NCBI GenBank assembly: GCA_047495785.1
Contig: JBLDXI010000054.1
Span: 868,001-932,000 of the forward strand
Length of the DNA stretch: 64,000 nt
Direction: 5' to 3'
DNA from: Lepidodermella squamata
Lineage: Eukaryota > Animalia > Gastrotricha
In this document: positions 1 to 58,054 of the stretch, one piece after another
Position numbering within the stretch: position 1 is the first letter of the stretch
Layout of the letters: the number at the start of each line of letters is the position of its first letter
Translations under genes and position numbers: made by a program
Notes under the pieces: model-generated
The model's database searches: none
What the model was told of the DNA's origin: nothing
Seen by the model: the letters and a program-made list of their open reading frames with translations, nothing else

Positions 1-2499
1 CGATTTCGCCGCAATCGAACTAATCTAGCCAATTTGTACGCGTTCAAAATGATCAAGTTTGTAACAACAAGCGCTATTGTCATGCTAGCAACGGATACAT
101 GAAGGGCTTCGTCGCTGGACATTTCCATCGCAGCAATTAGGACCGTGGCGATCACCATCAAGCTGCTACAGTACACCGCTTTTGCTGTCGTCCTGAGTTC
201 ATTCAACACAGCCAACGCATTATGTAAATCAGGAGCACTGCGTCGAGAATTGCGGATTCTCGGTAACGTAACTTTTCGAACAGCAAGCAACGACATTCGT
301 GATAGCATCTTGTCCTATTAAAAAAATATCACTGAATCTTATAAATGTGAAACCCCCGAAAAATAAACATACAAAAACTAGGTAAGCTCTAAAGCAGTTG
401 ATGAGAATTGCGAGAGCGTGAAAAATCCCAATGCTCAGAAGAGTACCCAGCGTAACCATGTTGTTCATATCCACTCGGCAGACGATTCGATAAAAGAGGT
501 AAGCAACACTTTCATCTAGTGAGTATTGTCTTTCGTAATTGAAATATTCGTAAAAGAAGCCTCCTGAGAGTAGGAATGCCAAGATAAGGCAAAATTGAAC
601 AAAAAACCAAGCTCGAACCTGCTTCAACTTGTTTTTCCCTTCGTGAACTAATCGATTATATTTGGCGCGGACTATCAGCAATTGCCGCCCGCGGCGAAGT
701 TTTGTGTAGAATCCAGCCGAGATGAAGGTGAGGCCCAAAGACAAGCATAAACAACTGAGCGAGCATGGCAAAACTACAAGTTTAGTGAATGTCTGTAGAG
801 TCACGACAGCTGAAATCGGATAGCATAGCATCAGCACACTGCCTATGTTGATGTAGCAATTTTCAAGCAAGAAAGTGACTCGGAATGCCGCGCGCAACCT
901 TGGACTGCCTTGATTATGAGCCAGAATGTCTAACAGTATTGAAAGAAGGCTCATTATTATTCCCAAAGTCGCAAGAGATATATGAGCCCGGAGGACATGC
1001 TCATTTGTTGCGGCGGTCGCAATAGAGATCAACCGAACTGAATCGCGAGGGGCAAGGTTCCCAGGAGACCCCCAGTTCGGACCTCCGTTTAAGAAGCCTA
1101 TTGATTGATCATCTGCTTCATAGTAAGCTACAATCGGTCTTATAGGAAGATTTTTTGCAACTGCCTTTCTGAAGACTACAGGGTTAAATCCCTTGGTATT
1201 AAGCGTAGTGCTCTGGTCGAAATTATAGACGGATTTCAACCCATTCATCGCAGTTTTGTAGACTGCTTGATTGAATGTATCCCGGAAAATACCGCCGTTC
1301 TGTTGGAAATTCAGAGAATTCAACGTCCATTCTCGGATCGTCGAGTTGAATTTATCTCTCAACGAGTTTTCAACCGCGTTAATTAGGTAACCCGAATATA
1401 GGGCGATGTCGTAGCAAAGAGGCGTGATGTTTGTCGGGTCTAAGATTTGCGCCGCATTGACGATTTTCGCCTCGATTCTGCGTGAAAATTCAGTACTAAT
1501 TAGCCCGCTTGAATCTGTATAACCTGGCCCAGCTACATCACTCATCGAACCGAAGGATACGATTAGCCAACTTTCCGCAACCTTAGCCAATATATCCCTA
1601 GTGCACCAAGATGCAACTGATTCCGGAATTTTGGCAGTTGCCGGGTCAAAACTAGCCCAGCCAGTAGCAAAATACGCGTAGCTTGGCCCAAACATGCCGA
1701 AACGATAAAACCAACACGACAACATTAGGCCGTGATCTGCGTTTGCCAGAATGATACGAGGCTCGAGATTTCGCAAGGATTTCATTGCAACTATCATTTC
1801 ATCGTTTTTGAAGTCAGTGGTAACTTTGCCGTACCATACGACCGATATATTTCGAGCAAGAAAGTGGCTCACAATCTCGCTTTCAGCATCGTTGAAAAAT
1901 GGAAGGTCCTCTGTTATTACGGCAATTTTAGTCCAGCCCATTTTAGCGGAGAAAGCAGCCATACCCTCTTGAACTGTGTAAGGCGATTTGGTCAAAGGAA
2001 AAACTGTACCGTATCGAGGCCGATTTGGGATTGAGCTGTAGAGATAGTGGGTAAGACCGAAAATGTTTAGCTTATTCATGGGCAGAGCTATTTTTAGTTG
2101 GGCAGCTGTCGAGCACCACCCCATAATGACGAGAGGGATTCGATCCTCGCTAGGCCACGTCAGCTCTTTGACCACCCGTTGCACGGCTAGCGCATCGTTG
2201 CATTCGTCATCAATCATAGATATCTGTAATTCGTAGCCGGGTAACCAAGTGTCATTTGAGTGAAGCTGGTCCAGAGCTATCTCCATCGATTTCGGGCACA
2301 GGGGCCCTATTGCATTTCCGCCGATTCGATAGTTGACATATGCCAGCATTCTTATTACTTGAGGTCTTGCTAATGATATCGGTAGGGTTGTCCTGACGTA
2401 GCTATCCATTGATGCATTTGCTAATACTCGCTGCCCCAGCGAAAATCGCACTTCAGAAAAAGCGAGAAAAACGAATGCAACTTCCATTGTAAAGAGCAT
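1..2499 (-). CDS. Class C (GABA-B-like architecture) orphan GPCR: Venus-flytrap/ANF-receptor domain + 7TM; 3' end runs off the window
   Basis: Signal-like N-terminus (ATG 2499 or 2487) and VFT motifs (WLPGYEL, DDECND, GWCS, MGWTKIAVI). Removing a 58-bp GT-AG intron (315-372) gives a last exon with LNELRTTAKAVY (similar to GABA-B LNDSKYIGMSVY) and TM6/TM7. No cysteine-rich domain. Confidence 0.8.
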
Positions 2500-4284
2500 G
2501 ATTGATAGGTTACTTGGACAAAGCAAATTTCAGTGAATCCTTGAGATTGCAGCATATAAGCTATATAAAGGAAATTCACGTTAGTTCTCAGCTACCTATA
2601 GCACATAGGCACCCCATGATTAGCGGGATTTTCGAACCAGCCTAATTGTCGAAGTTTTGTCTCTAGGTCATTTCGGATGTTCATAATATTTGAAATGCTG
2701 TAAAAACTTTCTGCACCGCCATGTTTGTCAAAATGTCGCCGGCAAAGAGAGCGCTTGCATGAGATGAGCGTGCTTCGGCGGTTTTTAGATATAACAAAAC
2801 GTGACTGGTTTGCGTCACTGGCTTGCGTCACTGGCCTGCAGGCACGTTGAGATTTTCGCTGTAAAAAAACGTATAATTTGATAGCGAAGACCCTAGGTGC
2901 GCAGGTCAGTTGTTGATGCACATCGCTCGATATCCCTCAAATAACAGATTTTCGATTTTCATAATGATTCTTAGCGAATTAGTTATGTAAAGCTGAGTTC
3001 GACATTCCACAGATAGAACAGATTTCGAAACTCAACCCAACTCACAGCCAATTCACTTTCATGACAAATTTCATGACGTACTTGTCGATACCCATACCGA
3101 TGCTAATGTGACCCACCTTGAGCGTCATTTCTGGATATTTGAAATGGATTGATTTGTAGCTCAAAATAGGCGTGTTGGTATGGGTTTCCCGATGTATTCG
3201 AGTTGCATATTTGTCATGCAAATGAGATATATAGGACAGCTGTGGTGTTCGAAATGATCAGTGAAATTGTTGTTTTTCACATGTTGGCAAGAAGGTTTGC
3301 TCAAAAGTGTATTTTCGCCCATAGAGCGAAGTAGGACCGCGGAACTGAAAGGGATAAGGAAAATCGACATTAAGGAAGCATTTATTTATTGATTTAAGAG
3401 CTTAAGTCTGCTCACAACAATGTTAATCGGGCAATCCACTCGGCAGAAAAATCAGAGTCAAATTCAGTCCGGTTCAAATTCCATTTGTCCATTTTGATAT
3501 GATAATACAAAACAACAACAAAATTGGCTCCACATTAACGTTAAAATTTTTGAGCTTCTTCGAAAGTTCAGATTCTCGTTGAGTCACAGGCATAGATTCA
3601 TTCCAGTTGGATATCGTTCATTCGTTAGAGGGAGTCGGATTTTAGGAGTACACCAAACCCAGTCAGTTCGAGCTCCCTGAGATACACCCTGAGTGGTATT
3701 TTGTTTATTTACGAAGAATTTTCGGCCAGTTTTCGGATGTTTAAAAACTAGGCCTAGAACGTTCACAGATATTTTGAATAAATGAGGATCAATTATCAGA
3801 ATCATGAGAATCAATAAATAGGTACAGCTACTTTATATTTTATAACCCCACTCTTATTGGGGACAGTATTCGCCACGCTATCTAGGTGATTGGTAACATG
3901 GTTTGGAAGTATTTCCTCGCAGGTGGTGCTAGACATAGTGTTGATCAAAGTTTCTGTTAACGCTCCAAGTGCCCGGAATTTTTCGTAATATCCCTTGTAT
4001 GTTTTCAGGAGGTCGAAAAATCTTAGAAACCGTGCGTCGAAAGCTAGCTCAGAACTGTGCGAACAATTAGAGAATAGAAAAGAGGGCGACTAGGGATCAC
4101 GAGATGGGAGGACTTCCTGAATCAAAATGTTCACACAGTATACCTCGTTTTATTCATTCAACGCTGATCATTAATCTGCTGACTATCAACAGCCTCGAGA
4201 ATGAATGTTTACGATTTTATTCCCTTCAACCAAAATTTACTATCAATTTCTCGACTAAACTGCAAGCTGCTCCTCTTGTCCGAT

Positions 4285-5810
4285 TCACTCCTCGACCTTA
4301 GCACAGGTGTACTCGTATCGGTGGTTGCCGCCAGGACCGCGCTTCAGTTGGAACTGTTGCAGCAACCTGCCGTCGGGACAGGTCGGGCGGTAGTTGGCGA
4401 GAGCAAACGTTTTGCCCTTGTGGTCGATTTCATCAGTCACATGGTTGGTAGTGGTGACCTTACCTGTGACCTGTAAACACATTTTATTAAAACAGTAGCA
4501 GTTTGAATTCTGAAATTCGCACCGAGCAGCAAGTGTAGTAGTAGGTAATTGAACCTTCGGCAATTGTGAGACGGTCGGTAACTAGGACAAATCGGTTCAG
4601 GACTTCGTTAGCTTTGCATATGACAGCTTGCCTGTCGAGAAAGTTGGTGTCGCCGTAGTAGCCAGGGGTCCAAGCGTTCTGGATTTCGCGGCACACCGGC
4701 ACCATGGGGGCAGCGCAACACGTGTACGCGTACTGGACGGTGGTTGCGCTAGGCCTGGTCAGTCCGAAGGAAGTGATATAGTTCCTCTCGGGACATTGCA
4801 CGGTCTGCAAATTGAGCTGGTACGTTTTGCCATCAGGGTCATCGGCCAGTCTGGTTTTCAGGGTGGCATTAGAGCACTTCTCGTACCACTTCGGAGCTAC
4901 ATAGAAGCAATATTTTTCAATTTAAACCTGTCTTGTGCGGATTGCAACTCACGCAGATTAATTTTAGCGCATGTGTATTCAAAGCGCACCATACCCTGGT
5001 CTACATCGCGTTGCAGGTGCCACCTCTGCATGAGCTCACCGTCCGCGCAGGCGAGATTGTGGCGGTCTAAGGTCGTCGTTTTGTTACTTTCCATGTCGTA
5101 ATCGGTTGTTGGCGCCCTGGGAATAACATCGAATTCGCCTTCAATCTGGAAATGAAAAATAAACATGTGAGATGGCGAGATGGCGCCTGATAATCTGAAC
5201 GTTTCCTGGACTCTTAGGCCTTGGCCATCAGAAACCTCCCCCAAAGTGGGGGATCTCACCACACGCTTGTTTCAGTCGAACCTCACGAGCTCGTAGGTAA
5301 ATTTGGTACACGATCTCGATACTAACCTGGCAGCATGCGTAGTTGAATCTGATCTGACTCCACAATGTGGTCAGGTGGAAGCCTTTCAGAAACTCATTCG
5401 CGTTGCACTTGATATCCTGTTTTTCGAGGGAGACAGCAGCAAAGCCATTACCATCCGTCAGGTCATTCGTAACCTGTCTGCACTTTCCGACAGACGGCGC
5501 CTTGCAGCACTTGTATTCATACTGGGCAGACGAAGCAGTCGCATTCGGAGTGAATTTGAGCTTCCACGAGGTCAAGTAGCTGCCGTCGGGGCAGTAGACA
5601 TACCGGTAATTGAGATCGTACAGCATGCCGTCGGTATTGAACGCGTCGGTCGTGCTCACTCCAGTCGAGCATTCGACGGTCTTCGCAGGGCTGACAGTTG
5701 TTTCTGAAAAGACGAAATCGACGTGAGCCTAGGAAGGATTAGAGAGACGGTAACTTACGACTAACGACAATGCCTAATGTCGCCGCGATAACAGCCAGTC
5801 TGAAAGCCAT
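4285..5810 (-). CDS. Secreted Cys-rich protein with six ~55-60 aa repeats (LDRx-x-x-C...F/WxL...YxYxCC), distantly dermatopontin/beta-prism-like; function unknown
   Basis: Signal peptide MAFRLAVIAATLGIVVS. Five exons are joined in frame by GT-AG introns 5704-5758, 5146-5326, 4897-4952 and 4471-4522. Repeats end CC, CC, CAK, CC, CC, CAK. Stop at 4285-4287. Confidence 0.85.
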
Positions 5811-6489
5811 AACCAAGGTTTTAATTGACAATTTTAATTAAAACGAAAAGCAGATGAATGACTGGATGAAAATTTGGATGATCGAGCAGCTTGAGGATGT
5901 TTATGGACAGTTTTATTTTTAACTCGTCGACAACTGAGCATACATTCTATCCGAAATTAGCTTGGTTGTGGGGGACGATGCGAAGCAATTGTTTGCTAGC
6001 ACCAGTGGTAAAATAATAATGATAATTTTTAAATATTATTCTCGAACATCCCATAGCAAATAATTTTCTTATTATTATTATTAGGCATTAATGTAAAGTC
6101 GCCCACTGCTAGTGCGATTAGGCAGCTGGCCTGAGAGTTGTTCTTAGCTTTTGAGTGCAAAACGCTGCAATTTCTGTTTTGACCTCATTCATCGACAAAC
6201 AGCCTCCATTCCCTCCTGAGCCTAGCCATGATCGCCGAGGTAGTTAGTGTAGCTGAAATCTTCATGATCCTGCTCGATAAGCTTGTTTGCAAATTGGCAT
6301 GACTGTGGTGCTAAGCATCCCATATGCGATTAAGTCACCATTTAACCACTCAATTGATTAGTGACAAAGCGCCGGTTATGGGCGACGTCATGGACGACCA
6401 AGCGCCAGCAAGGGAAATGGCGAAATCGAAGACAAGATGGACCCGGCGCAACTATGAAAATTTCTTGATCCATAGTGCGAACCATAGAC

Positions 6490-6624
6490 CATAGAGCGAA
6501 GTAGAACCGCGGAACAAAAATCGTCATAAGGGTCCCACCTGTGGTCTTTGTCTGAGCTCATCTTGCGGACCGATGGAACTGGCAGGGATAATCCCTACCA
6601 TCCCTAGCGTTACTTCGCTCTATG
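6490..6624. mobile_element. 135-bp CATAG-ended MITE forming the right end of the composite element
   Basis: CATAGAGCGAAGTAGAACCGCGGAAC at 6490 is near-identical to the end at 3320 and is paired with the TIR at 6611-6624. Partial CATAG heads at about 6471 and 6483. Confidence 0.75.
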
Positions 6625-6941
6625 TTTTCGCCTGATAAGACCTTTTCGAAAGCATTCTCGATCGATTAAAACCTCCTTCCGTTAGTTGGAGGATCAGTTA
6701 TTTGTAGGATACAGGCACCGCAACAGGCTACGCGGCGGAAACTGATGTGGCATCGTGGTTTTTCATTTCCCCCGCATTCGACGCATCAACCGGATGCATG
6801 TTTTGAATACTTAACTTGGTGATTAAAGAAGCAGACATGACACTTGGCGGAAATATATGCTATTCTGATTGTTTAAACGTTAATCAAACGTCGTTCTTGC
6901 TTCAAGTCTTTTTCGTGGTTTTACAGGAAGACAATTCAACT

Positions 6942-8156
6942 ATGGCCAATCTGACCAACTCAACGTACCCTACTGCGCGAATTGCCAACAGTGGTTGGAT
7001 CGATGTTGATTTCCCAGATCGAGGCTACGGCCGCTCGAAGCCTTATTTCGTTGCTTTCTATCACGACGTTACCGCAACGGCCACGGAAGATCGACTAGGC
7101 TGGGTCGTAGCTTGTAGCCTGGCTACTTCCCTATCCATCATCGCGTCGATCACGAATGTCGCTGTATACGTTCAACGCCGGGTGAAACTAGATTTCCTCT
7201 TTCTTACGTGCTGCCTACAAATGCGAAATGCCGTGTACGCCTGCGTGTATTGTTATGGGCTCCTAATCACGCTAAGAACAGGTTGGTGGGATGCTTCTCC
7301 TATGGCTTGTACGATCTCTCTCTGGCTTATATGGTCCTTGGGTGGGTTCGGTGTGCTCATCGTAGCTTTGATTTCATACGAAAGACGCCTCTGTATCTCA
7401 TCGAACAAGATCAACTATAAACCAAACAGCTTCAAGGTATGTCCCATAGACTATTTTTTTCAATATTGCATGAGATATTTCTCTCAGATTTGTGGTGTAA
7501 CAATTATTTTGCTGGGCTTGTGTATGCTGCTTAATGGTGTCTTCGCTTGGTGGCCATGGAACACTTTCGCTGCGAAATGGGTCAAAATAGAGGAATTAAA
7601 CACAACTCAGCCTGTTCTGATTTGCGGAAATTTCGACTATAGCTTTTATGGCGACTTTGATACATCGTTTTTGGGGGTCATGTACTACGCATCTCTGTGC
7701 GCAAGCTCTTCGTTATATTTGGGCATCAATTATTGGAAGATTTTCAAAACAATTGAACATTTGAAGAAATCTCGAAGCGGCATTACTATTCAAGCAAACG
7801 TAGTGACCTCACTTTCCTCCTTAACATTGTCAACACGGATGGCTGAATGGCACCGTAAAGAGATCTATCTGGTCAAATTGTCATTGGGGCTATTTGTACT
7901 CTTTGTTGTTACTTACATTCCTGGGTTCTGCTCGGCTTTATTAGTGGGTATGTGGCCAGTGGGTGCTTGGCGGCGGGAGTTTGCTTGGGTGAGGAAGTTT
8001 TCAATGCTCTGCATAATAGTTGGCGGGTTGATTAGTTCAGTGCTGCAGTGTATCACGCCAACTCACATCGAGTCATATTTTGATAGGCTTAACAAAGGAC
8101 GGATAAGATTGTTTTTGGCTATGACGCTTATGCGTGTGAGTCCTCGGCGTTTTTAA
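6942..8156 (+). CDS. Orphan rhodopsin-like 7TM receptor, PDRGYGR family, paralog 1 (intact)
   Basis: ATG 6942. In-frame 51-bp intron 7437-7487, at the same position as in the paralogs. Seven hydrophobic segments, ISYERR (DRY-like), TM3 Cys and ECL2 ICG Cys, TM6 YIPGF. Confidence 0.8.
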   Translation: MANLTNSTYPTARIANSGWIDVDFPDRGYGRSKPYFVAFYHDVTATATEDRLGWVVACSLATSLSIIASITNVAVYVQRRVKLDFLFLTCCLQMRNAVYACVYCYGLLITLRTGWWDASPMACTISLWLIWSLGGFGVLIVALISYERRLCISSNKINYKPNSFKVCPIDYFFQYCMRYFSQICGVTIILLGLCMLLNGVFAWWPWNTFAAKWVKIEELNTTQPVLICGNFDYSFYGDFDTSFLGVMYYASLCASSSLYLGINYWKIFKTIEHLKKSRSGITIQANVVTSLSSLTLSTRMAEWHRKEIYLVKLSLGLFVLFVVTYIPGFCSALLVGMWPVGAWRREFAWVRKFSMLCIIVGGLISSVLQCITPTHIESYFDRLNKGRIRLFLAMTLMRVSPRRF

Positions 8157-8968: not shown

Positions 8969-10271
8969 TCAACAGTTCGAAGTAAAAAGAGGCTCCGTCT
9001 GAGATTTTTGCAAGCGAGCCGCTGATCCACTGTCAATTACAACACCAGACTTTGCTTTGAAAACGTTTAGTCTGATGCTCATAGATTTGTGTAAGAAAGC
9101 CTCCACGTGAGATGGCGTGACACATTGCAAGCAGGCGTTGAAGAACATCCCTGCGATCATGCAAAACAGCCCAAATCGCCTGGTCCACGCGAATTCAGCT
9201 TGCACGGAGCCTAGAGCCCATGTACACATGACGAACACGGAGTAAAAAGTCGGTAAATAGCTCAACACGAAAAATAGGAAAAGAGCAATTGAGAGCTTCA
9301 CGAGATAGATTTCTTTGCGCTGCCATTCAGCTAGATTCACTGATCTTCTGGGGCCGATATTTTCCCTCAAATCGCTTGAGGAGGCTCTCAATCTCATCGG
9401 ACTCCCATACGACCCTTGTCGCGAATTTTTCAATCTATCGATAGTCCTAAAGATGATGTAGTAATTCAATGCCAAATAATTTGAAGCCGCGGTGAATAGG
9501 ATGGAATAGTAGGCCAATGGTAGGATTGACGTATCGAAATCGCCGTAAATGCTGTAATCCCAATTTCCGCAGATCTGAACTGGTTGATTGTCGTTCGTAC
9601 CATTAATGATAACCCATTGAGCGGTAAATGTGTCATAAGGCCACCAGGAAAATCCAGCACTTGTTACAAGGCAAATTACTAGAAGAATGAGGCATACTGC
9701 GAAAATCTATGGAAATACACAAAAATACAAAAATCAATCGCACATTCCCAAAATCAACCTTTCCAGTGCTTGCTTTGTATTTCAGCTTATTTGAAGAGAT
9801 GCAAAGGCGTCTTTCGTAAGAAATCACAGCATCAATTTGAGCACCCCAACCTCCAACCCCCCAGATCAGCCATTTTGTTGTAGTACAGGCCTCTGGAGTA
9901 GATTCCCACCAGCCAGTGTTGAGAGTGGTCAACAGGCCGTAGCAGTAGCAGATTGTGAATACAAAGCTGCGAAAATGGAGAAAGCACGTCAGCATCAAGA
10001 AATCGCGTTTAACGCCCCGTTTGATATAGACGTAAACATTTACGATTGATGCGATTATAGTGAGGCATGATATGCTAACACAGGCTAAGGTCCATCCCAA
10101 TCTCTCACCGATGGTTGTCGAAGCAACATCGTGGTAGAAACCGACGAAAAACGGCTTAGCTCTGCCGTATCCTCTGTCTGGGATTTCAACTTCCAGCCAA
10201 GCTCCACTGATTATGTTAGCTAATGGGTAGGAAGTTGAGATGTTAATGCTCGAATTATCCGAAACGTTCAT
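8969..10271 (-). CDS. Orphan rhodopsin-like 7TM receptor, PDRGYGR family, paralog 2 (intact)
   Basis: Two exons joined by a 52-bp intron 9707-9758 give a continuous ORF (…STGK|IFAVCLILL…) homologous to paralog 1. Confidence 0.8.
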
Positions 10272-12577: not shown

Positions 12578-14151
12578 ATGCGACTGACTTTAAAGCGAAT
12601 GTTTTTGCTCGCCATAGCTGCTACGATCGCCATTCACGCTCTGATTTCCTACTTATCAGGCGATATTCGCTCATTTTGGCACCGTCAAATCAGCAACTAT
12701 AGAAATAGCCCGCTCAGTGATAAAATTCCGCTTTATCCAGAATACGGCAACGTTAGAACTATACTTATCTGGACGAAAAGGTATACGCCCCACACAAATT
12801 ATTAAATCTCCGAAATCAGCATTGAAATTTAGATTTGGAACCATGCCGTGGAGGCTATTGGATTTTGAGATGGACCGCGAGACTATTATCATGAATCAGA
12901 ACTCGAAACAGTCGCTTTGCCGCATTACCTTCGATAAAAACGCCATTCAAACCGCCTCAGCCTTGTTATTCCACGCCTACGATACAAACCCGATGGATAT
13001 GCCACCTCACAGAGCGCCATGGCAGCGATATATCTTTTTCACAATGGAGCCACCAGAGTGGAACCAATATTTGGATTGGTCATTCCTTTCGAGTGTACGG
13101 TTCAACTGGACGATAAGCTACTCGAGAAACGCAGATATAACTATTCCTTACTGGCGCCTGGTAAAAAACGAGCACGTTCCTCCGGATCTATCGTGGCAAT
13201 TAGACTTTTTCGTCAATGATTTCCATGCAAGAACATACGACGCTGTTTGGATAGTCAGCCATTGCGAGTTGGTCATTTTTACTTTATCATTGCGAAAATT
13301 CAAATTTAAGAGCCTGGTATGATCCAAAGGGCATCGTTCAAAAGATGTATTACGCAATTTTTTTAATTATGAAAGCTGAATGCTGAAATGTTTATTTAAT
13401 TCACTATAGGACTGATGGGAAACGGGAAGCTATTGTCAAGAGACTTATCGAACTGGGGATGAAAATCGACATTTTCGGAGTATGTGCTAATCGGAGTTTT
13501 GAGGACCTATTCGATTGGAACGGCGAGTCTTTCCTAACGAACTACCGATTCTACCTCGCTTTCGAAAACGGAGTCTGCAACGATTACTACACAGAGAAGG
13601 CTGAACGAAGTATGATCGCAAGTCAACGATACGGGACTATTCCTATTGTCTACGGTGGGGCGGATTATTCGAAAATTATGCCGCCGAACTCGTTCATAAA
13701 CATTCTAGACTTTCAATCTGTTGACGAGTTCTGGAACTACGTGAAATTCCTGAAAAATCCTAGGAACAAAATGAAGCTGCAGGAATTCTACGCATGGCAT
13801 TACAATTATGAAGTCAAAGATGAGTCCTATTTAGTCGAAGTAATGAGATCGACTTGTTCGAAATTGTGGGCGTCCGATAATGAAGAATCCAAGTCTTATT
13901 CATATTTAAGTTCTACATCTTTCAGTAACTGTACATTGCCTGATATTGCAAAGCAAATCATTGAGTCCTTCGAACTATATCCCTTTTTCACTTTTGCCAC
14001 AAATTTAGCGATCTTTCGAAACAATCATTCCACGATCTTTCTTTTTGCTTTAATACTGGTTGTTGTAGTAGGTACTAAGCTATTTTTACGACGCTTCAGA
14101 GTGTTTATCGTTCGAGATATGGATAAATCATTCTCAGGCTTCCGAAAATAA
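12578..14151 (+). CDS. Alpha-1,3-fucosyltransferase (GT10) paralog 1, with extra C-terminal hydrophobic segment
   Basis: N-terminal TM; LLFH, QRYIFFTMEPP, FNWTISYSRNADI, WIVSHC; GT10 motif YRFYLAFENGVCNDYYTEK. Introns 12781-12832 and 13268-13409. Confidence 0.9.
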
Positions 14152-16033: not shown

Positions 16034-17481
16034 ATGCGGTTGAAGCGCTCAACATGCTTAATATTGGTGTCGGCTAAAATCGCAATCTCTTTCCTGCTAT
16101 TCAAAGCTTTCTGGCTGAAATTATCCATATGGAGTACCATCAGCGACTATCGAAATCAAGACCTACTCCAGGCAGATTTCGATGAGGCCAAAGCTATTAA
16201 AATCGACGGTTTGATAAAGACGAAAACTATACTCACATGGACTGGAAGGTAAGCAAGGTTGATTTGTCTTTTGAAAACTTTTCATTGGAAAATCTCAGAT
16301 TTGGCGGGAAACCTTGGAACTATATGGGTGTCGAAATTAGAGACGGATATATCGTCCCCTCAAATGAAAAAGACCCTATAAACGCTAGAAGATGCATGAT
16401 CACTAGCAACCGATCTTTTCTAAATGAATCATCCGCAGTAATATTTCATGCTTTCGACATTAATCCCTACGACATGCCTCCGAAACGAGCGCCATGGCAA
16501 CGCTACGTCTTTTTCCACATGGAGCCGCCAGAAATAGCTAGAGATGAAGTTAATTGGCAATTCGTCTCTCATATCGGCTTTAATTTAACAATGAGTTACT
16601 CGAAAGCAGCTGATATCCAGGTCCAATACCTCAAAATAATTGAAGCGCATAAATATGGCGTGGATCAAAAAATCAACGGATTTGTCGATAATTTCGCAAA
16701 ACGGCCCTTCGACGCGTTTTGGATGGTCAGCCACTGCAGATCGGAGGGCTACCGAGAAGACTTAGTCGCCGAGATGATTCAGAATGGTTTGGCTGTCAAA
16801 GTTCACGGGCGATGCGCTGGCGAGCGTTTCGACGATTATTGGGATAACGGCGGCGACAAAATTCTGCCCGATCATAGATTTTATCTTTCATTGGAGAGCG
16901 GGTTCTGTGATGATTACGCCACGGAGAAGGCCGAGCATGGTATTTCTGCTAGTCTTGATTACGGCCTTATCCCTGTGGTTTACGGGAAAGCTAACTATAC
17001 CTCTCTCCTTCCGCCTGGATCTTTCATAAATGTCGCAGATTTCAAAAATATCGAAGAATTAGTCAATTACCTAAAATTCCTATCAAAACCTGAAAATCGA
17101 GAGAAATTGTTCGATTTCTTTCAGTGGCACAAGAAACACCAGGTTTTGAACAGCTTATACCATGTCGAAGGAATGAAAGCGCTTTGTAGCAAAATTTGGT
17201 CGGAAAATCTTTCTGACCCCCAAAGCTATGATTTCATCAATGAAAATACATTCAGTAACTGCACGGTGCCGGACTTAGTCAGCTCAGTTCGCGATAGAAG
17301 GTGGACTTTCTATTACCCGTTTTTCTCGCTGTGGACTAATATAAAGATTTTCGCTATGGCTCATCGAATTTTTCTTATTTGTATGCTGATCGTCTTTATG
17401 GCTGTTATCTTCGCCAAAACTGGTCTTTGTCTAAAAATTGTTGCATTCCGGGCTCGAGTAGCCGGTGTGAGATGGAGGTGA
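16034..17481 (+). CDS. Alpha-1,3-fucosyltransferase (GT10) paralog 2, with extra C-terminal hydrophobic segment
   Basis: ATG 16034. A 50-bp intron at 16249-16298 matches intron 1 of paralog 1. Motif HRFYLSLESGFCDDYATEK. Lacks the second intron of paralog 1. Confidence 0.88.
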
Positions 17482-17720
17482 TTTTTCTATTCAATAAAAA
17501 TGAAATAATATATTTCAACCCATTCACGGTTAATTTTTGACGCGATCAATATAGTTTTGTTGACGAGTTAAAGTGTTAAAAAGCAGCAGTTTTAAGAGCG
17601 CGCACGGTGCATTCAGCCGACTTGAATAGCCACGTGCTCGAGTACCATCTGCTGCGTACATTTAGCATCACGTTTCATTTACAAGGAAAAAAAAACAAAC
17701 GGCTTTTTAAGGTACTTACT

Positions 17721-19661
17721 ATGCCTGCCGAGGCTGCGATATGGAGCGTTGTTGTGTCTTTCCTCTTCGGCTGTGGCCTAGCCTTTCTAGCCGGTGCTAC
17801 GGAAGTTGCGCACTCCCTCGCCATCACCCACGCTCTGCGCCTTAAAACAGCATGTGGCCTAGTTACCGTCTTCACATTCCTAGGCTCAGTCCTCGGCGGA
17901 TCAGTCATCGCTCGGTCGACAGTCAGGCAATTCACGCCGATTAGCAATATTGAAAGCGATGAGCTACGAAGCATTTCCTACATGACAGCCCTTGTTGCTA
18001 CCTGGGTGTACCCTATCATCGAAAGGATTTACAAAAAAATCGCAGCGAAGCGGGGGCGAAATGTGAAGAACGACTTTTCAGCCGCATTTCTACCCAACTC
18101 AGCCGCAACTTATTGCCTTCTTGGGTCTTTAATCGGATCAAACCTTGTCTCAGAGGTAGCTGGACTAACGAGTTCAGCCGAACACCCTGGGAGTAAAGAG
18201 AATCTCATAAGTATGGTTTTCTACCTACTTGCCTCGTTTTTCGGCGCTCCGATTATTGCAGGGCTGATTTCAGCCGGGACTTTTTACATACTTCAAAATT
18301 TCGTCCTACCAGCCTCGGCGCCTAAAGAAGGCCTTAACCACAAGCAGAGAAGAAAACGAGTTGCTTTACTCGCCTGTTTTGTCTACTTTATAATCCCGGC
18401 TTTGATTTGTTACGCAACGCTAAATGGCGGCCCATTAGGCCACGCGTTTGAGCTAACTTTCGACCCTATCACCTCCCTTCCAGACTGGGTGCTGAAAGCT
18501 CTGTTCAGCCTAGGTTTCGGCCTGTTATCTTGCGGGGCCTGTCATTTCGTGATTGCGCCTCGTTTGGAGAAACATATCGTTAACAAGTCGGTTTTCATGA
18601 TGAAAAGGGGTGAGCTGATCAAGGATGCAAAGCCTCGGAGGCCAGCCGAGATACCAATGCTGAAAATCGACTCGTCGTCCCCCTCAACTTCCCGACCCCT
18701 GAGATCTGCCTTGAAGAATCCAATTTCAAACAAGTTAAGCAGCGTGAATTCCCACTCATTATCTGCACCTACTGATGAGTCTGTAGATCCTGTATCTACC
18801 GACTATTCCTTCCACCGATCTCGAACTCCGAGTCCGTCCCTACCAGACCTACCCATCATACCCCCTTTCATCGACCATAGTATCTCAGTTATGGAGGATG
18901 AGATAAAGAACGAGAATCCTATTCATAACACTAGGGAAAAAGATAATGGGGCGAAACGATTCATATTCCTCCTAATGTCTATGACTTGTTTCAACTCATT
19001 TGCCCAGGGCACGAATATGATAGGATGCATCAGTGGTCCTATAATAGCGGCCTTCAAATTCGCCCACCTCGAAAATCTCAATACTGGCGTGCCCAAAGTC
19101 AATATCAGCTCATTTAATGAAACCTATCGCCATCACTACGACACTGAAGCGTTTCTAGCTGTTGACTACAATGAGTGGTGGATTTTGATGTTGGTTTCGG
19201 GCAGTTTGTCTATTGGCTTGTGGATTTTCGGTCGGCAGTTCATTGACCGGGAGAGGCTGGCGAGGCGGCAGAGTTTGATCCGAACCCCCGGCCAGACTTC
19301 AATGACGCGATTTTGCAGCGAGTTCGGGGCGGTTGTGACTGTTCTAGCGGCTACTCTAGCCCGAGTTCCTGTCAGCTTTCTCCACTGTAAAAGCTCATCA
19401 ACTTTCACTGCGACATATCTCTTCGCCGAGCAGAGGGTTGTTCGAGACAAAACTCGCATGGCCCCGGTTGCTGAGGTTAAGAAGCCTACATTTTGGCGGC
19501 AGATCCTCCTGAAATGCGTGTTCTTCTCGTGGCCTCTGACTGTGACTTCAAGTCTCGGCATTGGCGCGTTGTTGATGATTGTAATTGGTCGTGTTTACTT
19601 TCAACTGCTGCCTATTCTGCAAAGTCAAATCATATCCACATCAGCGAGGAATGTTCATTGA
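17721..19661 (+). CDS. SLC20/PiT family phosphate-transporter-like protein with degenerate signature motifs
   Basis: Intronless. Two PHO4-like halves (AGATEVAHS…ACGLVTVFTFLGSVLGG; FNSFAQGTNMIG…GLWIFG…VPVSFLHC…SWPLTV) flank a large Ser/Pro-rich loop. Confidence 0.8.
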   Translation: MPAEAAIWSVVVSFLFGCGLAFLAGATEVAHSLAITHALRLKTACGLVTVFTFLGSVLGGSVIARSTVRQFTPISNIESDELRSISYMTALVATWVYPIIERIYKKIAAKRGRNVKNDFSAAFLPNSAATYCLLGSLIGSNLVSEVAGLTSSAEHPGSKENLISMVFYLLASFFGAPIIAGLISAGTFYILQNFVLPASAPKEGLNHKQRRKRVALLACFVYFIIPALICYATLNGGPLGHAFELTFDPITSLPDWVLKALFSLGFGLLSCGACHFVIAPRLEKHIVNKSVFMMKRGELIKDAKPRRPAEIPMLKIDSSSPSTSRPLRSALKNPISNKLSSVNSHSLSAPTDESVDPVSTDYSFHRSRTPSPSLPDLPIIPPFIDHSISVMEDEIKNENPIHNTREKDNGAKRFIFLLMSMTCFNSFAQGTNMIGCISGPIIAAFKFAHLENLNTGVPKVNISSFNETYRHHYDTEAFLAVDYNEWWILMLVSGSLSIGLWIFGRQFIDRERLARRQSLIRTPGQTSMTRFCSEFGAVVTVLAATLARVPVSFLHCKSSSTFTATYLFAEQRVVRDKTRMAPVAEVKKPTFWRQILLKCVFFSWPLTVTSSLGIGALLMIVIGRVYFQLLPILQSQIISTSARNVH

Positions 19662-20587
19662 TAAATTTATGTTTACGGAAATAATAAAAGGTTTCTGATT
19701 TGATCGGTATTGAGCTTTTTGAAGTTTTCTGAAGGGATATTTCATCAGAAGAACATTTTCTCTTGGAGTAAACCTATCAAACGTTGAAAGTGAAAGAAGG
19801 GTTTACCTTTCGCCAAGAATGGGCCCCAAAGCGTGCAAAAATGATCTTCAAGATGTATATTTAGGCTGATCACGTTTTAAATTATTTGAAGTCGTGAAGT
19901 CACAATGTTAGTTTGAGGATGAATCGAGACTGCTGAAAGAAAACATTCTGATGTGTTTTCCTCTGAAAAAGTATGTTGGTTAGGCAATCGAGGAGGTCAC
20001 CCCTCGCAATTTTAATGTGCTCCCGCTCAATCACTATAACAGTTTGATTAACTATCCAAATTAGATGTAACACGAAGATCAGCCAGACATGTTGGACTTT
20101 TTCCAGATAAGGAATCGTCAGGTTGTTTGCGGACGTACTCATTAAATATTATAGCGTCTGCGAATTTTCATTGCGCTGGTTATGATGACATTAGGGACGA
20201 GGTCGTTTCGAGCTCGTTATCAGAACTAATATACCTGTTTTGATTCGTGTTTTCAATTAAGCTACCCCGAAGAGTGCGCGAGCCGCAGTGGTATGTCGAG
20301 GAAGTAAGCGAAAATGCACCTATTTCGCTATCAACGCCATCCCACATTTTTCAAAGCGACGTCACTTCATTCTTTGAACTAGGTGTTTTTCTGTCTCCAT
20401 TCAGACAAAATTGTAATTTCCATCTGAGAAAAGTAGTTGATTTTCTTAATGTGTCTACAAGGACGCACGTGATCTTGCATACCTGTAGGCGGCGGATATT
20501 TCAGGATAACACCTGTTTTTTCGATTAGCTTTGATTATACAGATAACTGAATATTCCTACATACTGACAACTTCATTCAGACCGACG

Positions 20588-22924
20588 ATGGCTAAGATTC
20601 TACTATTAGCTTCTTTACTGGGACTTGCTGTGAACTCAGCTACCCCGAGTAAGCCTTTAACCGTCGAAATGCTGAACCTGGCTCCTTTCGCAGTGATAGA
20701 CCCTCGTCAAGCCCAGGCTGTGATGTTAGCCTCCCAGTTGGTTGTCGATCACGTGAATGTAAGAAGCGACATTCTGCCGAATTATCAACTCCAACTTACC
20801 TTTCGAGACGAAATGCTGGGAAATGCAGCTGCTCGCCGCATTATCGACTTCCGAAGAGAAATCGACGGTAATACTAGCTTCATTCAATCACCCATAGTCG
20901 TCGGCCCTGCGATTTCAACCGGCTGTAAAGCTATTGGGCCGATTTTGGGCTACGTTAATACCGTTGCAATGTCAACGCTATGCTCAGCTCCGTTCCTCGC
21001 TGAGCACAGCCGTTATCCCAATCTTTACCTTTCCATTGCTACTGGGAAGACAACAGCTTTAGCCATTCTTCGATTTATAAGGGAGGTTGGCCGTTGGTCT
21101 AGATTCGCGATCCTTTCCACATCATCTAACGCAAACGACTACGACACAGCTTTCTTCCTGCATGACCGAGCTGTAGCTCTGGGATTCACTGTACCTTGGT
21201 TCAACATGGTCACAGACATTGATTCCGAGGCAATAACATCACTCAAGGACAGTGGGTTGAGAATTATCGTGCTCAGCACTGGGGGCTTTGCTTTGTTCAG
21301 CAAATTCATGTGTGAGGCCTTCAAAGTTGGAATGACAGGACCAAGATACGTCTTCATAGCTATGACCGCAGCTTTTTCAATGGCTCCTTCACCAGGCTGC
21401 AGCATGAACGAAATGCGCTTGCAATGGGAGCAAACGTTCTACTTCGGCTATACGTCCAAACCGGAGAATTACTCAACGGTAACTGATTTGGGGTATACAG
21501 CAGCTGATTTTGAGGCTGAACTTATGAAAAGGATGAATGTGGCCACTACTGACTTGTTTTCAATGGCGTACACAGCACATGATACGGTTTTAAAGGCTGT
21601 GATGGCACTTCACAATACTGAGCTCGAACTCAAATGGCGGTACAATTTGACCCTAAGTGATTACAAGAGCGATCCAGAAAAAATTGCTAGAATCGCGAGT
21701 GAGTCATCACTCAATTCGAAGGTTGTAGGCGTTCGGGTTGGATTGATGTCCTATGCTTCTAATGGAAATTTGCAAGGGGATATCCAAGCGATTTCGCAAT
21801 GGACGCAGTTTGACGGGATGCAAAATTATGCATTGGTTAAACAACGGTCTGACGACTTTGCCTATGAAACATTCTCGCTTCAAATCCTGAGGCCATTCAA
21901 CTGGAAATCGGGTAAACTTCCTATTGACCAACCGAGGCTAGAAGTTGAGGAAAAACGGCTTCCCAACGGAATTTTCACGGCTGCAGTGGTTTTCGGAGGA
22001 GTTTTCTCATTTTGTCAACTCGCGGGGGTGATTTGGATTGGCGTTCACTGCAAGTATAGTTCCATCTTCTTTCCTTCCACAAAGATTGTTGGGTTACTCG
22101 GCAGTTTGATCCTGAACTCATCAGCAATTCTTTTTGCTATCGATAGGGTTGTGGATAACATAATTCCCTTCATTTCATCAATTGCAACTCTCTGTATTGG
22201 CGTATCACTCATCTTCAGCGCAGTTTCAATGCGTGTTTTGGTACTTGTTCGCGTTCTACGCTCATCGAACGTTAGACGAAGCGCAAGAATGAGCATTGCC
22301 CCGACTTACATCCATTCAACAAGACCGACCCATCCTAGAGAAAGCCTGAGAAGAGAATCAGGCCTGAGAAGGGATTCAGTAATGACATTCGAATCGAGGA
22401 GATCGATCAGTATCACGCGTGAATTATGGCAGCACATGGATAAAACAGCTGCTATCTCGACCATTCCCCTGGTTCTTGCTTCAGTTTTACTAGCGACCGT
22501 TTGGTTTGCTAGCCAGGACACCAATTGTCGATCGAGCATGTTAGGAAATCGTGTTTACTCGGAAGAGCTTGATATGATTAAGGAGACTCGAGTCGTTATA
22601 TGCTTCACCCCTAACATGACTGCATTCATGCTGGCAATAGGTTGCCTTCAACTGACAGTACTTGCAATAGGGGCTATCTCCGCTTACCAGATGAACCAGG
22701 TCAAAAAATTATGGAAAAATGTACCTGAATTCGCGATGACTTGTTTGGGGGTTGTAAATTCGTCGACGCTGTACGCGGCCGCTGTTCTTATCACTCTGGT
22801 TCTATCAAACAGTTTGATTGAACAACAGATGGCGATTCTTTTTTCGATATTAGTACTTTCGATTTCATCCTCCTTAACTTGGATTTCACCGGCGCTGCGG
22901 AAGTTCAACATTACTGAACCCTAA
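20588..22924 (+). CDS. Class C (GABA-B-like) orphan GPCR, subfamily A copy 1
   Basis: Signal peptide from ATG 20588; VNVRSDILPNYQL, VVGPAISTGC, WSRFAIL; 7TM with a very short C-tail. Intronless. Paralog of 60925-63237. Confidence 0.85.
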   Translation: MAKILLLASLLGLAVNSATPSKPLTVEMLNLAPFAVIDPRQAQAVMLASQLVVDHVNVRSDILPNYQLQLTFRDEMLGNAAARRIIDFRREIDGNTSFIQSPIVVGPAISTGCKAIGPILGYVNTVAMSTLCSAPFLAEHSRYPNLYLSIATGKTTALAILRFIREVGRWSRFAILSTSSNANDYDTAFFLHDRAVALGFTVPWFNMVTDIDSEAITSLKDSGLRIIVLSTGGFALFSKFMCEAFKVGMTGPRYVFIAMTAAFSMAPSPGCSMNEMRLQWEQTFYFGYTSKPENYSTVTDLGYTAADFEAELMKRMNVATTDLFSMAYTAHDTVLKAVMALHNTELELKWRYNLTLSDYKSDPEKIARIASESSLNSKVVGVRVGLMSYASNGNLQGDIQAISQWTQFDGMQNYALVKQRSDDFAYETFSLQILRPFNWKSGKLPIDQPRLEVEEKRLPNGIFTAAVVFGGVFSFCQLAGVIWIGVHCKYSSIFFPSTKIVGLLGSLILNSSAILFAIDRVVDNIIPFISSIATLCIGVSLIFSAVSMRVLVLVRVLRSSNVRRSARMSIAPTYIHSTRPTHPRESLRRESGLRRDSVMTFESRRSISITRELWQHMDKTAAISTIPLVLASVLLATVWFASQDTNCRSSMLGNRVYSEELDMIKETRVVICFTPNMTAFMLAIGCLQLTVLAIGAISAYQMNQVKKLWKNVPEFAMTCLGVVNSSTLYAAAVLITLVLSNSLIEQQMAILFSILVLSISSSLTWISPALRKFNITEP

Positions 22925-24293
22925 AGTACGGGTGAACCGCTGAATGTAAGATATTATCACATTCCATGTAATATTTTTTGAAATTTGACGTTGTACAGAG
23001 GTCATGTTCGTCCGTTTTATCGCCGGAAAAGCATTCCGGTGCATTTGTCCAAAAATAAACAAAAACTGTCCTTTCGGTTAGATAGGAAAAGCTTCCCGAA
23101 GATTCGAGATTTTTCGGGATTTACTATTTTCAAGACTATACAGTTAAATACTAGGGTGCTAATCGATTTCATTAACGTGCTTAAAAGGTTCCTGGATTCA
23201 GGACAGATCTTTTCCTCTCTCGAAACTCGAGCTATCGAGCAAAATCTGAATTATTTGCGGGCTGTGTCTCGTGTCTTGCAAGTTCGAAATTTCGGAGCAG
23301 TACGAAAAGCTTATCGAAAAAAGGTTGAATCAACAATTTTTATTCTCGAAATCACGGGTATACTTAGAGACGAAGGCTATGGCGCGCTTCCGATTTCCGT
23401 TTTCCCCTGTTCGAAACGTGCTTCTATATTCATTAGGTACAGAGAACAGACACGAATCTCGACTCTGTGAGATGTTCAAGCTGTCGCTGCTACTCTTACA
23501 AGAAGTTTTTTGTGAAACAGAATGGCTGAAATCCTACTTCGTGCATTGTTGAGTCTATCGAAAAACGATTCGATGAGAGTTGGCGTGATACACTGAAGAA
23601 CAGCGCTCATCAGCGCGCCGTTTATAATGCAGAGAACGGTCAACTTCCTAACCCAGGGTAACTCAACAGTCCACGAGCCGAGTGACCACATGGTTACTGA
23701 TAAGCATGAACAGAACCCTGGAATGTAGCTGATGACAAACATTATGAACAACGACAACGAAATTTTGACTAGATAAATCTCTTTACGCTGCCATTCTGCT
23801 AAGCCAGCTGCTGATCTTGCAGTGGAGTACAGGGATGTACCGTCATTTGGGGCAAAATGAACTTTTGGGGCTAATTGGCCAAAAATTGAGGTTTTCACAT
23901 TTTTATCGATAGCTCAAAAACTACAAGATAAAACTTCACAAAAATTTACGGGGACGATTATCAACAAGCCTTTTACAAGCCTGTAAATTTTCAGCCAGGT
24001 ATGTCCCGGAATGAGGTCACAGCATGTTGTTGTTTAAAGGTGAGTTTGGGGAGGTAAAAACGACTCCTCTAAATTGAATTACCTGGAGCCAATCACGAGG
24101 TTTGATGTTCAGATGAAATTTTTTCCTTCGACCATTTTCGTCGTAGATGACAGCAAAAAAAACCGCGACCCCAGGCGATGCACAGGTATGGCTAGGTGAT
24201 TGTGGCCAAATTACCCCATGGAAAACTCAATGATGGGGGCTAATTGGCCACCCTTATCCTTATAATGGGTTTTTAATATTTGATGATTGTGAG

Positions 24294-24683: not shown

Positions 24684-26732
24684 CTCACAATCATCAAATA
24701 TTAAAAACCCATTATAAGGATAAGGGTGGCCAATTAGCCCCAAAACACCTGTCCAATTTGCCCCAAACCTGGGGCAAAATGAGCTTCCTATAAAATCGGA
24801 ATCAGGACCCTCTGAAACGTGTAAAAATGCGAAAAAAACAGGGGGTCATTTTTTTCCCGCGGCCATTTTGCCCCAATTTACGGTAGTGGTCCCTTGAGCG
24901 GTATAGCCGACTCGAGATTTCTTCAAACGGTCTATGGTTTTGAAAATCTTCCAATAGTTCATCCCCAGGTAGCTTGCAGAACTTGAGAATAGGGTGAAGT
25001 AAAACAGGACGTTGAAAAAGGTGGTGTCAAAGTCTCCTATGAGGCTGTAGTCGAAATCCCCGCAGATCAGAACAGGTTCAGTTGAGTTTCGTTCCTCAAT
25101 TATAAGCAATTTAGCTGAAAACGTATGGTATGGCCACCACGAAAATACAGCACTGTAAAGCATACTCAAACAGAGCAGAAGGAAAGTTACACCCAGTATC
25201 TAAGAGGAAGACAAAGGATAAGGTAAGCTGGAAAAAATTAATGAAATTTCACCTTGAAGCTGTTTGGCTTATAGTTAATCTTGTTGGATGAGATGCAGAG
25301 ACGTCTTTCGTATGAAATCGAAGCTTCAATAAGCAAACCAAACCCACCCGAGCCCCAAACCAGCCAAAGGGACATCGAACAGGCCATAGGGGAAGCTTCC
25401 CACCAGCCTGTTCTTAGGGTGACTAATAGCCCATAGCTATACGAACATGCGAAGATAATATCGCGAATGTGAAGACAGCATGTGAGAATGAGGAAGTCGC
25501 GTTTCACCCGACGTTGAATATACACGATAACGTTAGCGATTGAGGCGATGATTGTGAGGCTAGTGATGATAACGCTTGCAGCAGCCCATCCTATTCGATC
25601 ATCGATGGTTTTTGAAGCGACGTCATGGTAAAAAGAAACAAAGTACGGCTTTGATCGGCCGTAGCCTCGATCAGGCAAATCGACATCGATCCAACCGCCA
25701 TTGAGCACTCGAGCTATCGGATAGCTTGAGTTTGTTGTATTGTTCATTATGTGTTGATAATAGTTCAAAAAGCAGATTCGCCGTAAACTGTAAAAGATGA
25801 CACGGTTAGTGATTGCAGCTACGGCGGAAACTTCTATCGTGTTTCAAACATCTGATATATGCGTGCCTCTAGCATCATCTCCCTTTTCTCCTACCCATCG
25901 AGCAGTATAAAATGGGGAATTGTCATGGGAACGAAATCTAAATTGGGAATCTTACAATCCCTCGATAGCAAATGCAAATGCAGTAATCCCTCGATTCTGT
26001 GCATTTTAAATCGATCTATTTCAAAAAGGGAAATACAAACTAATTTTTTCTAAGCAGATGATCGGTGCCACCTTCTTAATTTGTGAGGCCTCCAGTTTTT
26101 TCATCTTTTGGCAATCACCTTTCTGATATTTCCGAACGAGCCTGGGTGGTAGCGTCGAGTTCCAATGATTCAGGTTGCGATCTTGGATCTCGGAGCTGCG
26201 AGGGATGGACAACATATTTTTGCTGTATTTGGCAAAATGACCAGTCAAGATGACAAGAAAAACTAAGAAAGCAAACTTAGAATCTTTGAGTGAACAAGAG
26301 CTAATAATTATGAATCACTATGAATGCACTTTTTGCGAAGTGATGATTCATAATTTTTGCAAAAAGATCACTAAGATCTAAGACTCAATTCCCTTCAAGT
26401 CTCAAGTCAACATACTTTTTGCCGTTTTGTGGAAAACACAAAAAATTAGCTAAAGCTCTCCTTTTACTTGATAAAGGTCATAAATTTAATAGGACGTGAA
26501 CAAATTTGTTACTAAACTTTATTTCGAGAAATAAATGCTGCAACCGGGTTGGGAGAAATTTATACTTGGATAAATGATCATGTTCTTTGGTCTACTGAAT
26601 GCCGTTAAAGAAAGCAACGTTTCTGTTAGAGTTTAAAAGTTTAAATGATTCACAAGAAGGCTAACAAGAAGGAAGAATTAACGTATTTGTCAGTAAACGT
26701 TTGAGTAAATTGCGGCTGCCTGGATCAAGCGT

Positions 26733-46433: not shown

Positions 46434-46498
46434 ACAGTTCTTACTTGGCGCCGATGGAGCAGTTTTCAAGCTTTCATTTCGTGGCCGGTTGTTTGCAG

Positions 46499-57550: not shown

Positions 57551-58054
57551 CAATTGCCGTTGCAGCGAGTTAAACGAGATTTAAGCCGTCGAAAGATTTT
57601 CAGCTAATTAAGAAGGGTAAAACATTCGCAACCGACCGCCCACTTCGCATCACTTTTCATTGCCTTCACTTTAGTGAGCAAGCAGATGATGCCGCTAGCA
57701 TTTTCTTCGTGTGAGGCAGGAGAATGCTGTTGTAGCGGAGTATACGTGGGTTACGTGGGCGAAAGATTTCAAGCTAGTTATAATGAAGGTAATGCCATCG
57801 TTCTGAATGAGCGTTCACGTACTCTTGCATCGACAGTATCGACCCCGTTCGACGACGGTTGAGCTGATTGTCGACAGGCGCTACGTGCTTTCACACGCGG
57901 AAAAACGGTGGGTGAAAGTTTTAAGGGTAAAATATTTTGATGGAATTTAACGAAAATTAGCACAACACACATTGCGATGGCACGCCTCGTATCTCGGTGA
58001 ATTAGTCTCACCAGTGCATCATTTTGCAATATTTTTATGGAATTTAAAAGGGGA

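Follow-up and report, generated by a model that had tools for sequence, protein, structure and literature searches.

A stretch of 64,000 nucleotides from the gastrotrich Lepidodermella squamata (assembly GCA_047495785.1, contig JBLDXI010000054.1, positions 868,001 to 932,000 of the forward strand), referred to here as the window, holds between positions 3320 and 6624 a unit of 3,305 bp that starts and ends with the same terminal inverted repeat (TIR), is framed by an 8-bp target-site duplication (TSD) and carries a gene with introns next to a complete miniature inverted-repeat transposable element (MITE). This unit appears to be a chimeric non-autonomous cut-and-paste element, of the Pack type or the compound type, which was built by aberrant gap repair and has taken in a young duplicate of a host gene; the probability of this reading is estimated at roughly one half. 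The window was analysed together with the contigs of three public runs placed on positions 2700-7300, of which X1 provides the data on depth and on the MITE family and X2 is an RNA run. From left to right, the features of the locus are the following.

3312..3319, no strand: left copy of the TSD, TTTTCGCC, directly abutting the outer left terminus.
3320..3375, plus strand: outer left end, ~56 bp long and matching the start of the typical MITE version, with its TIR at 3320-3333 (family comparison, X1 contigs).
3376..4290, no strand: filler, with no gene and no RNA coverage (X1 depth; no Pfam family in its open reading frames).
4285..5810, minus strand: coding sequence of the cargo gene, in five exons at 5810-5759, 5703-5327, 5145-4953, 4896-4523 and 4470-4285 (gene model, RNA contigs).
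5811..6470, minus strand: 5' untranslated region (UTR) and ~0.6 kb of upstream sequence of the cargo gene within the element (RNA contig end at 5859; depth of 385-527, the flank contigs having 97-120).
6471..6489, plus strand: two stretches that partly resemble the left terminus and share its orientation, CATAGTGCGAAC and CATAGAC, abutting the inner MITE.
6490..6624, plus strand: complete MITE of 135 bp, with TIRs at 6490-6503 and 6611-6624, which supplies the outer right end.
6625..6632, no strand: right copy of the TSD, TTTTCGCC, abutting the outer right terminus.

The terminal 14-mer, CATAGAGCGAAGTA, is found at exactly three sites in the window, namely 3320-3333 and 6490-6503 on the plus strand and 6611-6624 on the minus strand, where about 0.3 matches would be expected by chance even with two mismatches tolerated. 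The octamer TTTTCGCC touches both outer termini, at 3312-3319 and 6625-6632. It occurs eight times in the window, against about four expected, and the chance of finding it at both exact abutting positions is about 4^-8 = 1.5e-5 per pair of ends, with two pairs possible. The inner MITE has perfect 14-bp TIRs and unlike flanks, CCATAGAC on the left and TTTTCGCC on the right, and hence no TSD of its own. The duplication therefore belongs to the outer pair of ends and lies outside these only, which is the arrangement of a macrotransposon. The feature is real and statistically solid: the outer termini and the perfect 8-bp duplication are those of a single transposase-type integration, whose product is now 3320-6624. 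An initial annotation of this DNA had described these TIRs with an identical 8-mer at their outer sides and, at 6490-6624, a complete MITE with a left flank that does not match the duplication, and both descriptions hold at the level of single positions.

With regard to the two look-alikes beside the inner MITE, CATAGTGCGAAC matches the left terminus at 10 of 12 positions and CATAGAC at 6 of 7; 12-mers with two mismatches to the terminus number only four on both strands of the window. An excision footprint was considered for 6471-6489 and dropped, as both partial termini have the left-end orientation, rather than one left and one right.

The 135-bp element belongs to a repeat family with tens to hundreds of copies, its arms being present on dozens of X1 contigs. 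The depth of X1 on the right arm of the MITE rises to about 31,000 at position 6590, versus some 100 in the flanks; for the left arm, the 154-base bin in which it falls (3316-3469) has a mean depth of about 3,200. These depths suggest some 100-300 copies, the X1 contigs totalling at most 213 Mb. Many X1 contigs link positions around 3366-3372 to positions around 6533-6569 with 3-36 other letters in between; they represent regular members of the family, roughly 150 bp long. The family has the usual attributes of MITEs, being short and non-coding (no Pfam match in its open reading frames (ORFs)), ending in TIRs and existing in many dispersed copies with differing flanks. If TTTTCGCC accompanied most copies of the MITE, it would have to be counted as a part of the element or as a fixed target; this was checked and is not so, since the X1 contigs end loosely at 3320, 3323 and 6621, with an agreement of 0.43-0.45 and with sequences other than TTTTCGCC. 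Given these heterogeneous flanks of the other copies, TTTTCGCC is a target duplication and not element sequence. Within the 64-kb window there is no further copy of the MITE or of the cargo and no paralogous empty site. A metagenome scan with a 20-mer of the right arm returned one match, which lies inside a bacterial helicase-like ORF and was set aside as a chance match.

The outer left end is the remainder of another member of the family. Its similarity to the family ceases at about 3370-3375, and 17 X1 contigs continue differently behind 3370; the junction between this fragment and the filler is represented in X1 by four of six sampled words. Compared with the left arm of the inner MITE, the outer left end shows one substitution and 13 extra bases, so the two left ends derive from separate members of the family, and because most family copies align to the outer version, it is the inner MITE that carries a 13-bp deletion. 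The segment deleted from the inner left arm contains the motif AGGGAT, which is found at position 31 of the outer left arm and is absent from the inner one. The right arm, counted from its terminus, has the motif twice (positions 20 and 29) and once as the reverse complement (position 36), against a background of 0.04 occurrences per 70 nt. At a guess, AGGGAT could be a subterminal binding motif of the transposase, and the inner MITE could be weakened at its left side; if the motif does serve for binding, the right end would pair preferentially with the outer left end.

The cargo gene encodes a predicted protein of 393 amino acids with a signal peptide, 20 cysteines and two mutually similar halves. 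Its four introns, of 55, 181, 56 and 52 nt, are all of the GT..AG type, and three of them (55, 181 and 52 nt) are confirmed by spliced X2 RNA contigs. The transcript seems to start at about 5859, where one RNA contig ends in adapter-like sequence that is presumably a template-switch cDNA adapter. None of the ORFs of at least 50 amino acids inside 3320-6624 matches a Pfam family, and the element is therefore without a transposase of its own. The complete five-exon gene and the lack of transposase had both been part of the initial annotation, and on these two points the gene model, the RNA contigs and the Pfam search bear it out. As in Pack-type elements, then, the unit is bounded by TIRs and a TSD, is free of transposase and has a host gene with its introns kept as its interior.

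A Pfam search of the cargo exons found no family and no significant match to DERM (PF14704). The protein contains a repeat of about 55 amino acids (4523-4894, minus strand; consensus YLDRH..V.C ... I.Y.Y.C) that defines a family of about 450 remote relatives for which Pfam holds no model. A HMMER search with the domain encoded by exon 4 returned 448 such relatives at identities of up to 42%, among them a dinoflagellate transcript (1325 amino acids, 11 repeats) and proteins encoded on long contigs from metagenomes; one remote homologue matches DERM, at just E = 0.04. The AlphaFold model of the exon-4 domain has a predicted local distance difference test score (pLDDT) of 86.7. Its best fold matches in Swiss-Prot are dermatopontins, Millepora cytotoxin-1 and Limulus hemagglutinin, with template modelling (TM) scores of 0.44-0.51, probabilities of 0.77-0.99 and E-values of at least 0.07, and a fold search of the PDB with the same model found none significant, the best E-value being 0.47. 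In a protein atlas, the feature matches of the cargo reach 0.92-0.95 to clusters that hold DERM. The cargo protein may thus be dermatopontin-like by fold, as modelled, and not by family match. X2 contigs covering 4967-5703 also include expressed paralogs of about 83% identity, one of them starting with MSFTLAV, so the cargo gene belongs to a small expressed family.

The copy in the window does not appear to be the expressed one. The X2 RNA contigs are about 99.6% identical to the cargo coding sequence, with one or two differences per ~550 nt, and at positions 4637 and 5852 all of them differ from the letter in the window. They leave the window sequence at 4291, five bases short of the stop codon in the window copy, and run on into unrelated sequence with the ending KVENEGCVA* (NEGCVA and the stop where the window has E and the stop). 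This alternative 3' end, sought also as a further exon, is absent from the whole 64-kb window, and the RNA depth on the 3' flank in the window is 0.75 in 4086-4239 and zero further left. The break at 4291, the absent alternative end and the mismatches to the window indicate that the expressed gene is a sibling copy at another locus. The window copy would then be without its native last six codons and 3' UTR. It appears to be a young duplicate, roughly 0.4% diverged from the expressed sibling, and was copied rather than relocated.

Three elements of the initial annotation have to be revised in this light. The intact gene cassette said to have been relocated appears to be such a duplicate, whose similarity to the sibling stops inside the cargo, at 4291; the polyA region taken as native to the gene is replaced from 4291 on by another 3' end in the near-identical transcripts; and, of the two neighbouring MITE ends proposed to have acted together, the left one is a 56-bp fragment that has no right end and represents a different subfamily version.

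The depth of X1 along the element is uneven. The interior is covered by exact or near-exact contigs, each with 0-3 differences from the window, at a depth of 237-343, which is 2-3.5 times that of the flank:

3743-4058: X1 contig, depth 237, in the filler.
4295-4619: X1 contig, depth 343, its start adjoining the break at 4291.
5206-5677: X1 contig, depth 300.
5680-5995: X1 contig, depth 284.
Flanks and junctions: X1 contigs, depth 97-120; those that cross the junctions have 96.6 (2700-3347) and 120.1 (6595-7043).

In the filler, the stretches at about 3410-3530 and 3700-3780 are repeated some 8-12 times in X1 contigs, and the near-exact stretch 3743-4058 stands at about 2-2.5 times the flank depth. 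The doubled depth of the filler fits more than one copy of the whole unit and fits equally a donor locus of the filler itself. Other copies of the filler repeat carry an extra CATAGC after 3440. As the similarity to the sibling stops at 4291, the interior looks like a mosaic and not like one contiguous donor segment. In the X1 contig that spans the left junction, no branching is seen where the insertion begins and thus no empty allele, a weak negative since Logan contigs drop rare variants.

The reading preferred here is that the element was assembled during DNA repair. Its interior would then consist, in order, of the 56-bp left-end fragment, ~0.9 kb of partly repetitive filler, the young gene duplicate and the complete MITE, the duplicated segment beginning five bases short of the stop codon and including ~0.6 kb upstream of the gene. 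After a transposase had cut at a MITE, the break may have been repaired by copying synthesis for which the terminal repeats served as primers. The right end of the break would have primed on an ectopic MITE upstream of the parental gene, and copying would have proceeded through this MITE and the adjoining CCATAGAC into the promoter and the gene as far as 4291, where a template switch would have followed. At the left end of the break, some 56 bp would have been copied from a family member of the typical version, and the joining of the two products would have yielded a structure with one working left end and one working right end.

Two routes could have placed such a product at this site. In the first, a simple MITE would have inserted at TTTTCGCC and been excised, and the element would have been built in place, with no need for the unit to transpose. 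This route accounts for the intact TSD, the truncated left end, the inner MITE with its foreign left flank, the two versions of the left end and the break at 4291. In the second, the aberrant gap repair would have occurred elsewhere and the compound element would then have transposed to this position, with transposase supplied in trans. Accordingly, the 8-bp duplication may stem from the insertion of the original simple MITE or from a later jump of the compound element, about equally likely origins, and whether the element moved as a unit after its construction is about an even call.

Several points weigh against this reconstruction. The mosaic interior is deduced from one RNA run and from contig depth, and depth in Logan contigs is only roughly quantitative; inside the gene, for instance, the X1 depth falls to 84 at position 4637. 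The X1 contigs are based on short reads and break inside the MITE ends, so that the flanks are not physically linked to the cargo. X1 may also derive from the same sample as the window assembly, in which case its support is not independent. Furthermore, the break at 4291 may be due to an independent change in the sibling or to differences between strains; the RNA run is labelled as a different organism. Finally, the role of AGGGAT is a guess.

Of the other explanations, the one that survives best is that proposed in the initial annotation, a true composite element or macrotransposon. A fractured left end of one MITE and a nearby complete MITE, in direct orientation, would have bracketed contiguous host DNA, and a transposase supplied in trans would have used the outer ends and inserted the whole 3.3 kb at TTTTCGCC. 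The perfect outer TIRs with their 8-bp TSD, the mismatched flanks of the inner MITE and the origin of the two left ends from different copies are all in keeping with such an event, and an inner left arm without AGGGAT would steer the transposase to the outer end. Moreover, the whole interior, filler included, stands at about twice the flank depth or more, which fits more than one copy of the unit, and Ac/Ds provides documented cases both of macrotransposition and of compound elements (PMC3260210, PMC4270019). However, the left partner is just 56 bp long and lacks a right end, and the end of the sibling similarity inside the cargo, at 4291, is unexpected for one contiguous donor segment. With ~100-300 copies over at most 213 Mb, two independent insertions within 3.3 kb would be unlikely unless the family hops locally, and no second copy of the unit with a different TSD was seen in the 64-kb window. 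Repair, by either route, is favoured over macrotransposition by three features: the discontinuity in the cargo, a left partner that is a fragment and copy numbers that vary along the interior. Macrotransposition is regarded as possible and rather unlikely.

An assembly artefact is considerably less probable still. In that case, the locus would hold a simple MITE and the cargo would have been threaded in from another MITE-bounded locus, as might be suspected from the X1 contigs, which stop 28-30 bases inside both MITE ends and leave no independent record that joins the flanks to the cargo. Nevertheless, the window is contiguous, with zero ambiguous bases (N), and a long-read assembly would not be misled by a repeat as short as 56-135 bp. 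The structure of fragment, cargo and MITE must exist somewhere in any case, and X1 contains four of the six words sampled over the junction between left fragment and filler.

It is hardly credible that two unrelated MITEs inserted around a resident gene and that their flanking 8-mers agree by coincidence or as a preferred target: TTTTCGCC is indeed somewhat over-represented in the window (8 instead of ~4), yet the match is 8 out of 8 at both abutting positions (~1.5e-5 per pair), neither the left end, a fragment that lacks a right end, nor the inner MITE has its own TSD, the flanks of the family are heterogeneous, the 3' end of the gene is unlike that of the expressed copy and the interior stands at multi-copy depth. 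The probability that is left over falls to explanations outside those listed here.

A further possibility is that the compound element is a currently mobile unit, mobilised in trans and present at several sites with different 8-bp TSDs. This is considered doubtful, at odds well short of even.

The element lies in a neighbourhood that is rich in gene families. The window contains a cluster of class C G protein-coupled receptor (GPCR) ORFs, at 229-2526 (minus strand), 20531-22921 (plus), 34030-36294 (plus), 58037-60298 (plus) and 60925-63234 (plus), which carry the ANF_receptor domain and, in three of them, 7tm_3 as well, and which remain uninterrupted over 750-800 amino acids. For the first of these, at 229-2526, a search of 5.8 billion proteins found no relative. 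To the right of the element, the ORF at 6816-8156 has no Pfam family and belongs to a multicopy family in the window: the segment 6948-8106 has paralogs at 36744-37909, 24893-25735, 23530-23799 and 9297-10209 (all on the minus strand), with 65-79% DNA identity, interleaved with the receptors. The similarity among these paralogs begins 300 bp from the insertion site.

Other genes in the window include two family-10 fucosyltransferase genes (12717-14148 and 16237-17478, both plus strand), the first of which is divided, by an intron or a frameshift, between an N-terminal and a C-terminal ORF. At 17607-19658 (plus strand), an ORF for a PHO4 phosphate transporter has its nearest atlas clusters in plants and algae and in Nucleocytoviricota, which is odd for an animal gene; a word-based protein search with it gave no match at E <= 1e-20. 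The ORF at 28963-29625 (plus strand) encodes the ligand-binding domain of a Cys-loop receptor (Neur_chan_LBD, E = 2.6e-11); taken with the class C GPCRs and the dermatopontin-like fold, it points to an animal or a near relative of animals, which makes an animal genome plausible, with the PHO4 clusters as the discordant observation. Pieces of a PIF1-type helicase ORF, possibly a Helitron remnant, adjoin an ORF of 1200 amino acids with a reverse-transcriptase domain (39009-41276 and 42870-46469, both minus strand).

As to the superfamily, Yuan and Wessler are said to have characterised the P superfamily, in 2011, by TSDs of 7-8 bp and a CANRG-type terminus. The direct duplication found here, in its one instance, is exactly 8 bp long and fits this length. 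The terminus CATAG agrees with the pattern CANRG and not with the hAT pattern, YARNG; a literature search for such terminal consensus patterns (CANRG) returned nothing usable. As with MITEs of the P superfamily, the element has inserted on the promoter side, within a short divergent intergenic region. In the material analysed, no transposase element of the THAP or P type bearing these termini was identified. The assignment to the P superfamily, drawn from one 8-bp TSD and the terminal pattern, is provisional, and the family may instead belong to hAT or to another group with 8-bp TSDs.

Compound Ds elements, filler DNA and gene capture have been documented in maize (PMC3260210), and composite insertions with the structure of macrotransposons are likewise documented (PMC4270019). 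The closest described architecture is that of the maize compound element Ds-l4-483 together with the gene-carrying Ds2/Ds-l4, of the hAT superfamily (PMC3260210). In these elements, as here, a short regular non-autonomous element stands at one end and a truncated duplicate end at the other, transcribed or genic DNA with introns is trapped in the middle, and perfect TIRs and an external 8-bp TSD go together with the lack of a transposase. The TSD of Ds-l4-483 adjoins the complete inner element on both sides and is thus present in three copies, whereas the other flank of the inner MITE differs here; moreover, the truncated end of Ds-l4-483 duplicates the same element, while two versions of the left end are found here. 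Unlike in the Ds elements, the cargo here is a gene with an intact ORF and not a fragment, and the host is not a plant.

The next closest are the macrotransposons (Huang and Dooner 2008, cited in PMC3260210) and Composite Insertions (Zhang et al. 2014, PMC4270019) that arise by alternative transposition of Ac/Ds, in which the ends of two copies, one of them fractured, bound host DNA, with an 8-bp TSD and, in principle, the ability to transpose once more as a whole. For those cases the donor alleles were known and the events could be traced by genetics, whereas for the present one, known from its sequence, no donor, second copy or active transposase was seen and the interior is mosaic-like. A third likeness is to Pack-MULEs and other Pack-type elements of plants and to Turmoil-1 of C. 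elegans (PMC2572040), which are also non-autonomous TIR elements with a DNA-level copy of a gene and introns kept, the parental gene persisting elsewhere, as is probable here too. The Pack elements usually carry gene fragments, often chimeric, and have long TIRs and TSDs of 9-10 bp. Here, in contrast, the reading frame is nearly complete (six codons replaced by one), about 0.6 kb of the promoter side is included, the TIRs measure 14 bp and the TSD 8 bp. According to the Turmoil-1 paper (2008), the transduplication of protein-coding genes was unknown in animals at that time (PMC2572040).

The process seen at this locus, gene capture by a cut-and-paste transposon, is a known one and no new mechanism is involved. 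Duplication of whole genes at the DNA level by such transposons is well documented in plants, through Pack-MULEs, compound Ds elements and macrotransposons, and rarely so outside them. The present case is young, as seen in the perfect termini and TSD and in the ~0.4% divergence from the expressed sibling, and the captured copy retains its ORF, all splice sites and its promoter side. It is thus a potential test case for how such elements form, by alternative end use or by aberrant gap repair, and for whether functional duplicates result. If the element were indeed a mobile unit, a complete, promoter-bearing and intron-containing host gene would be duplicated around the genome, with the loss of AGGGAT from the inner MITE committing the transposase to the outer end, and the element would represent a natural gene-duplicating macrotransposon of a P-like family outside plants.

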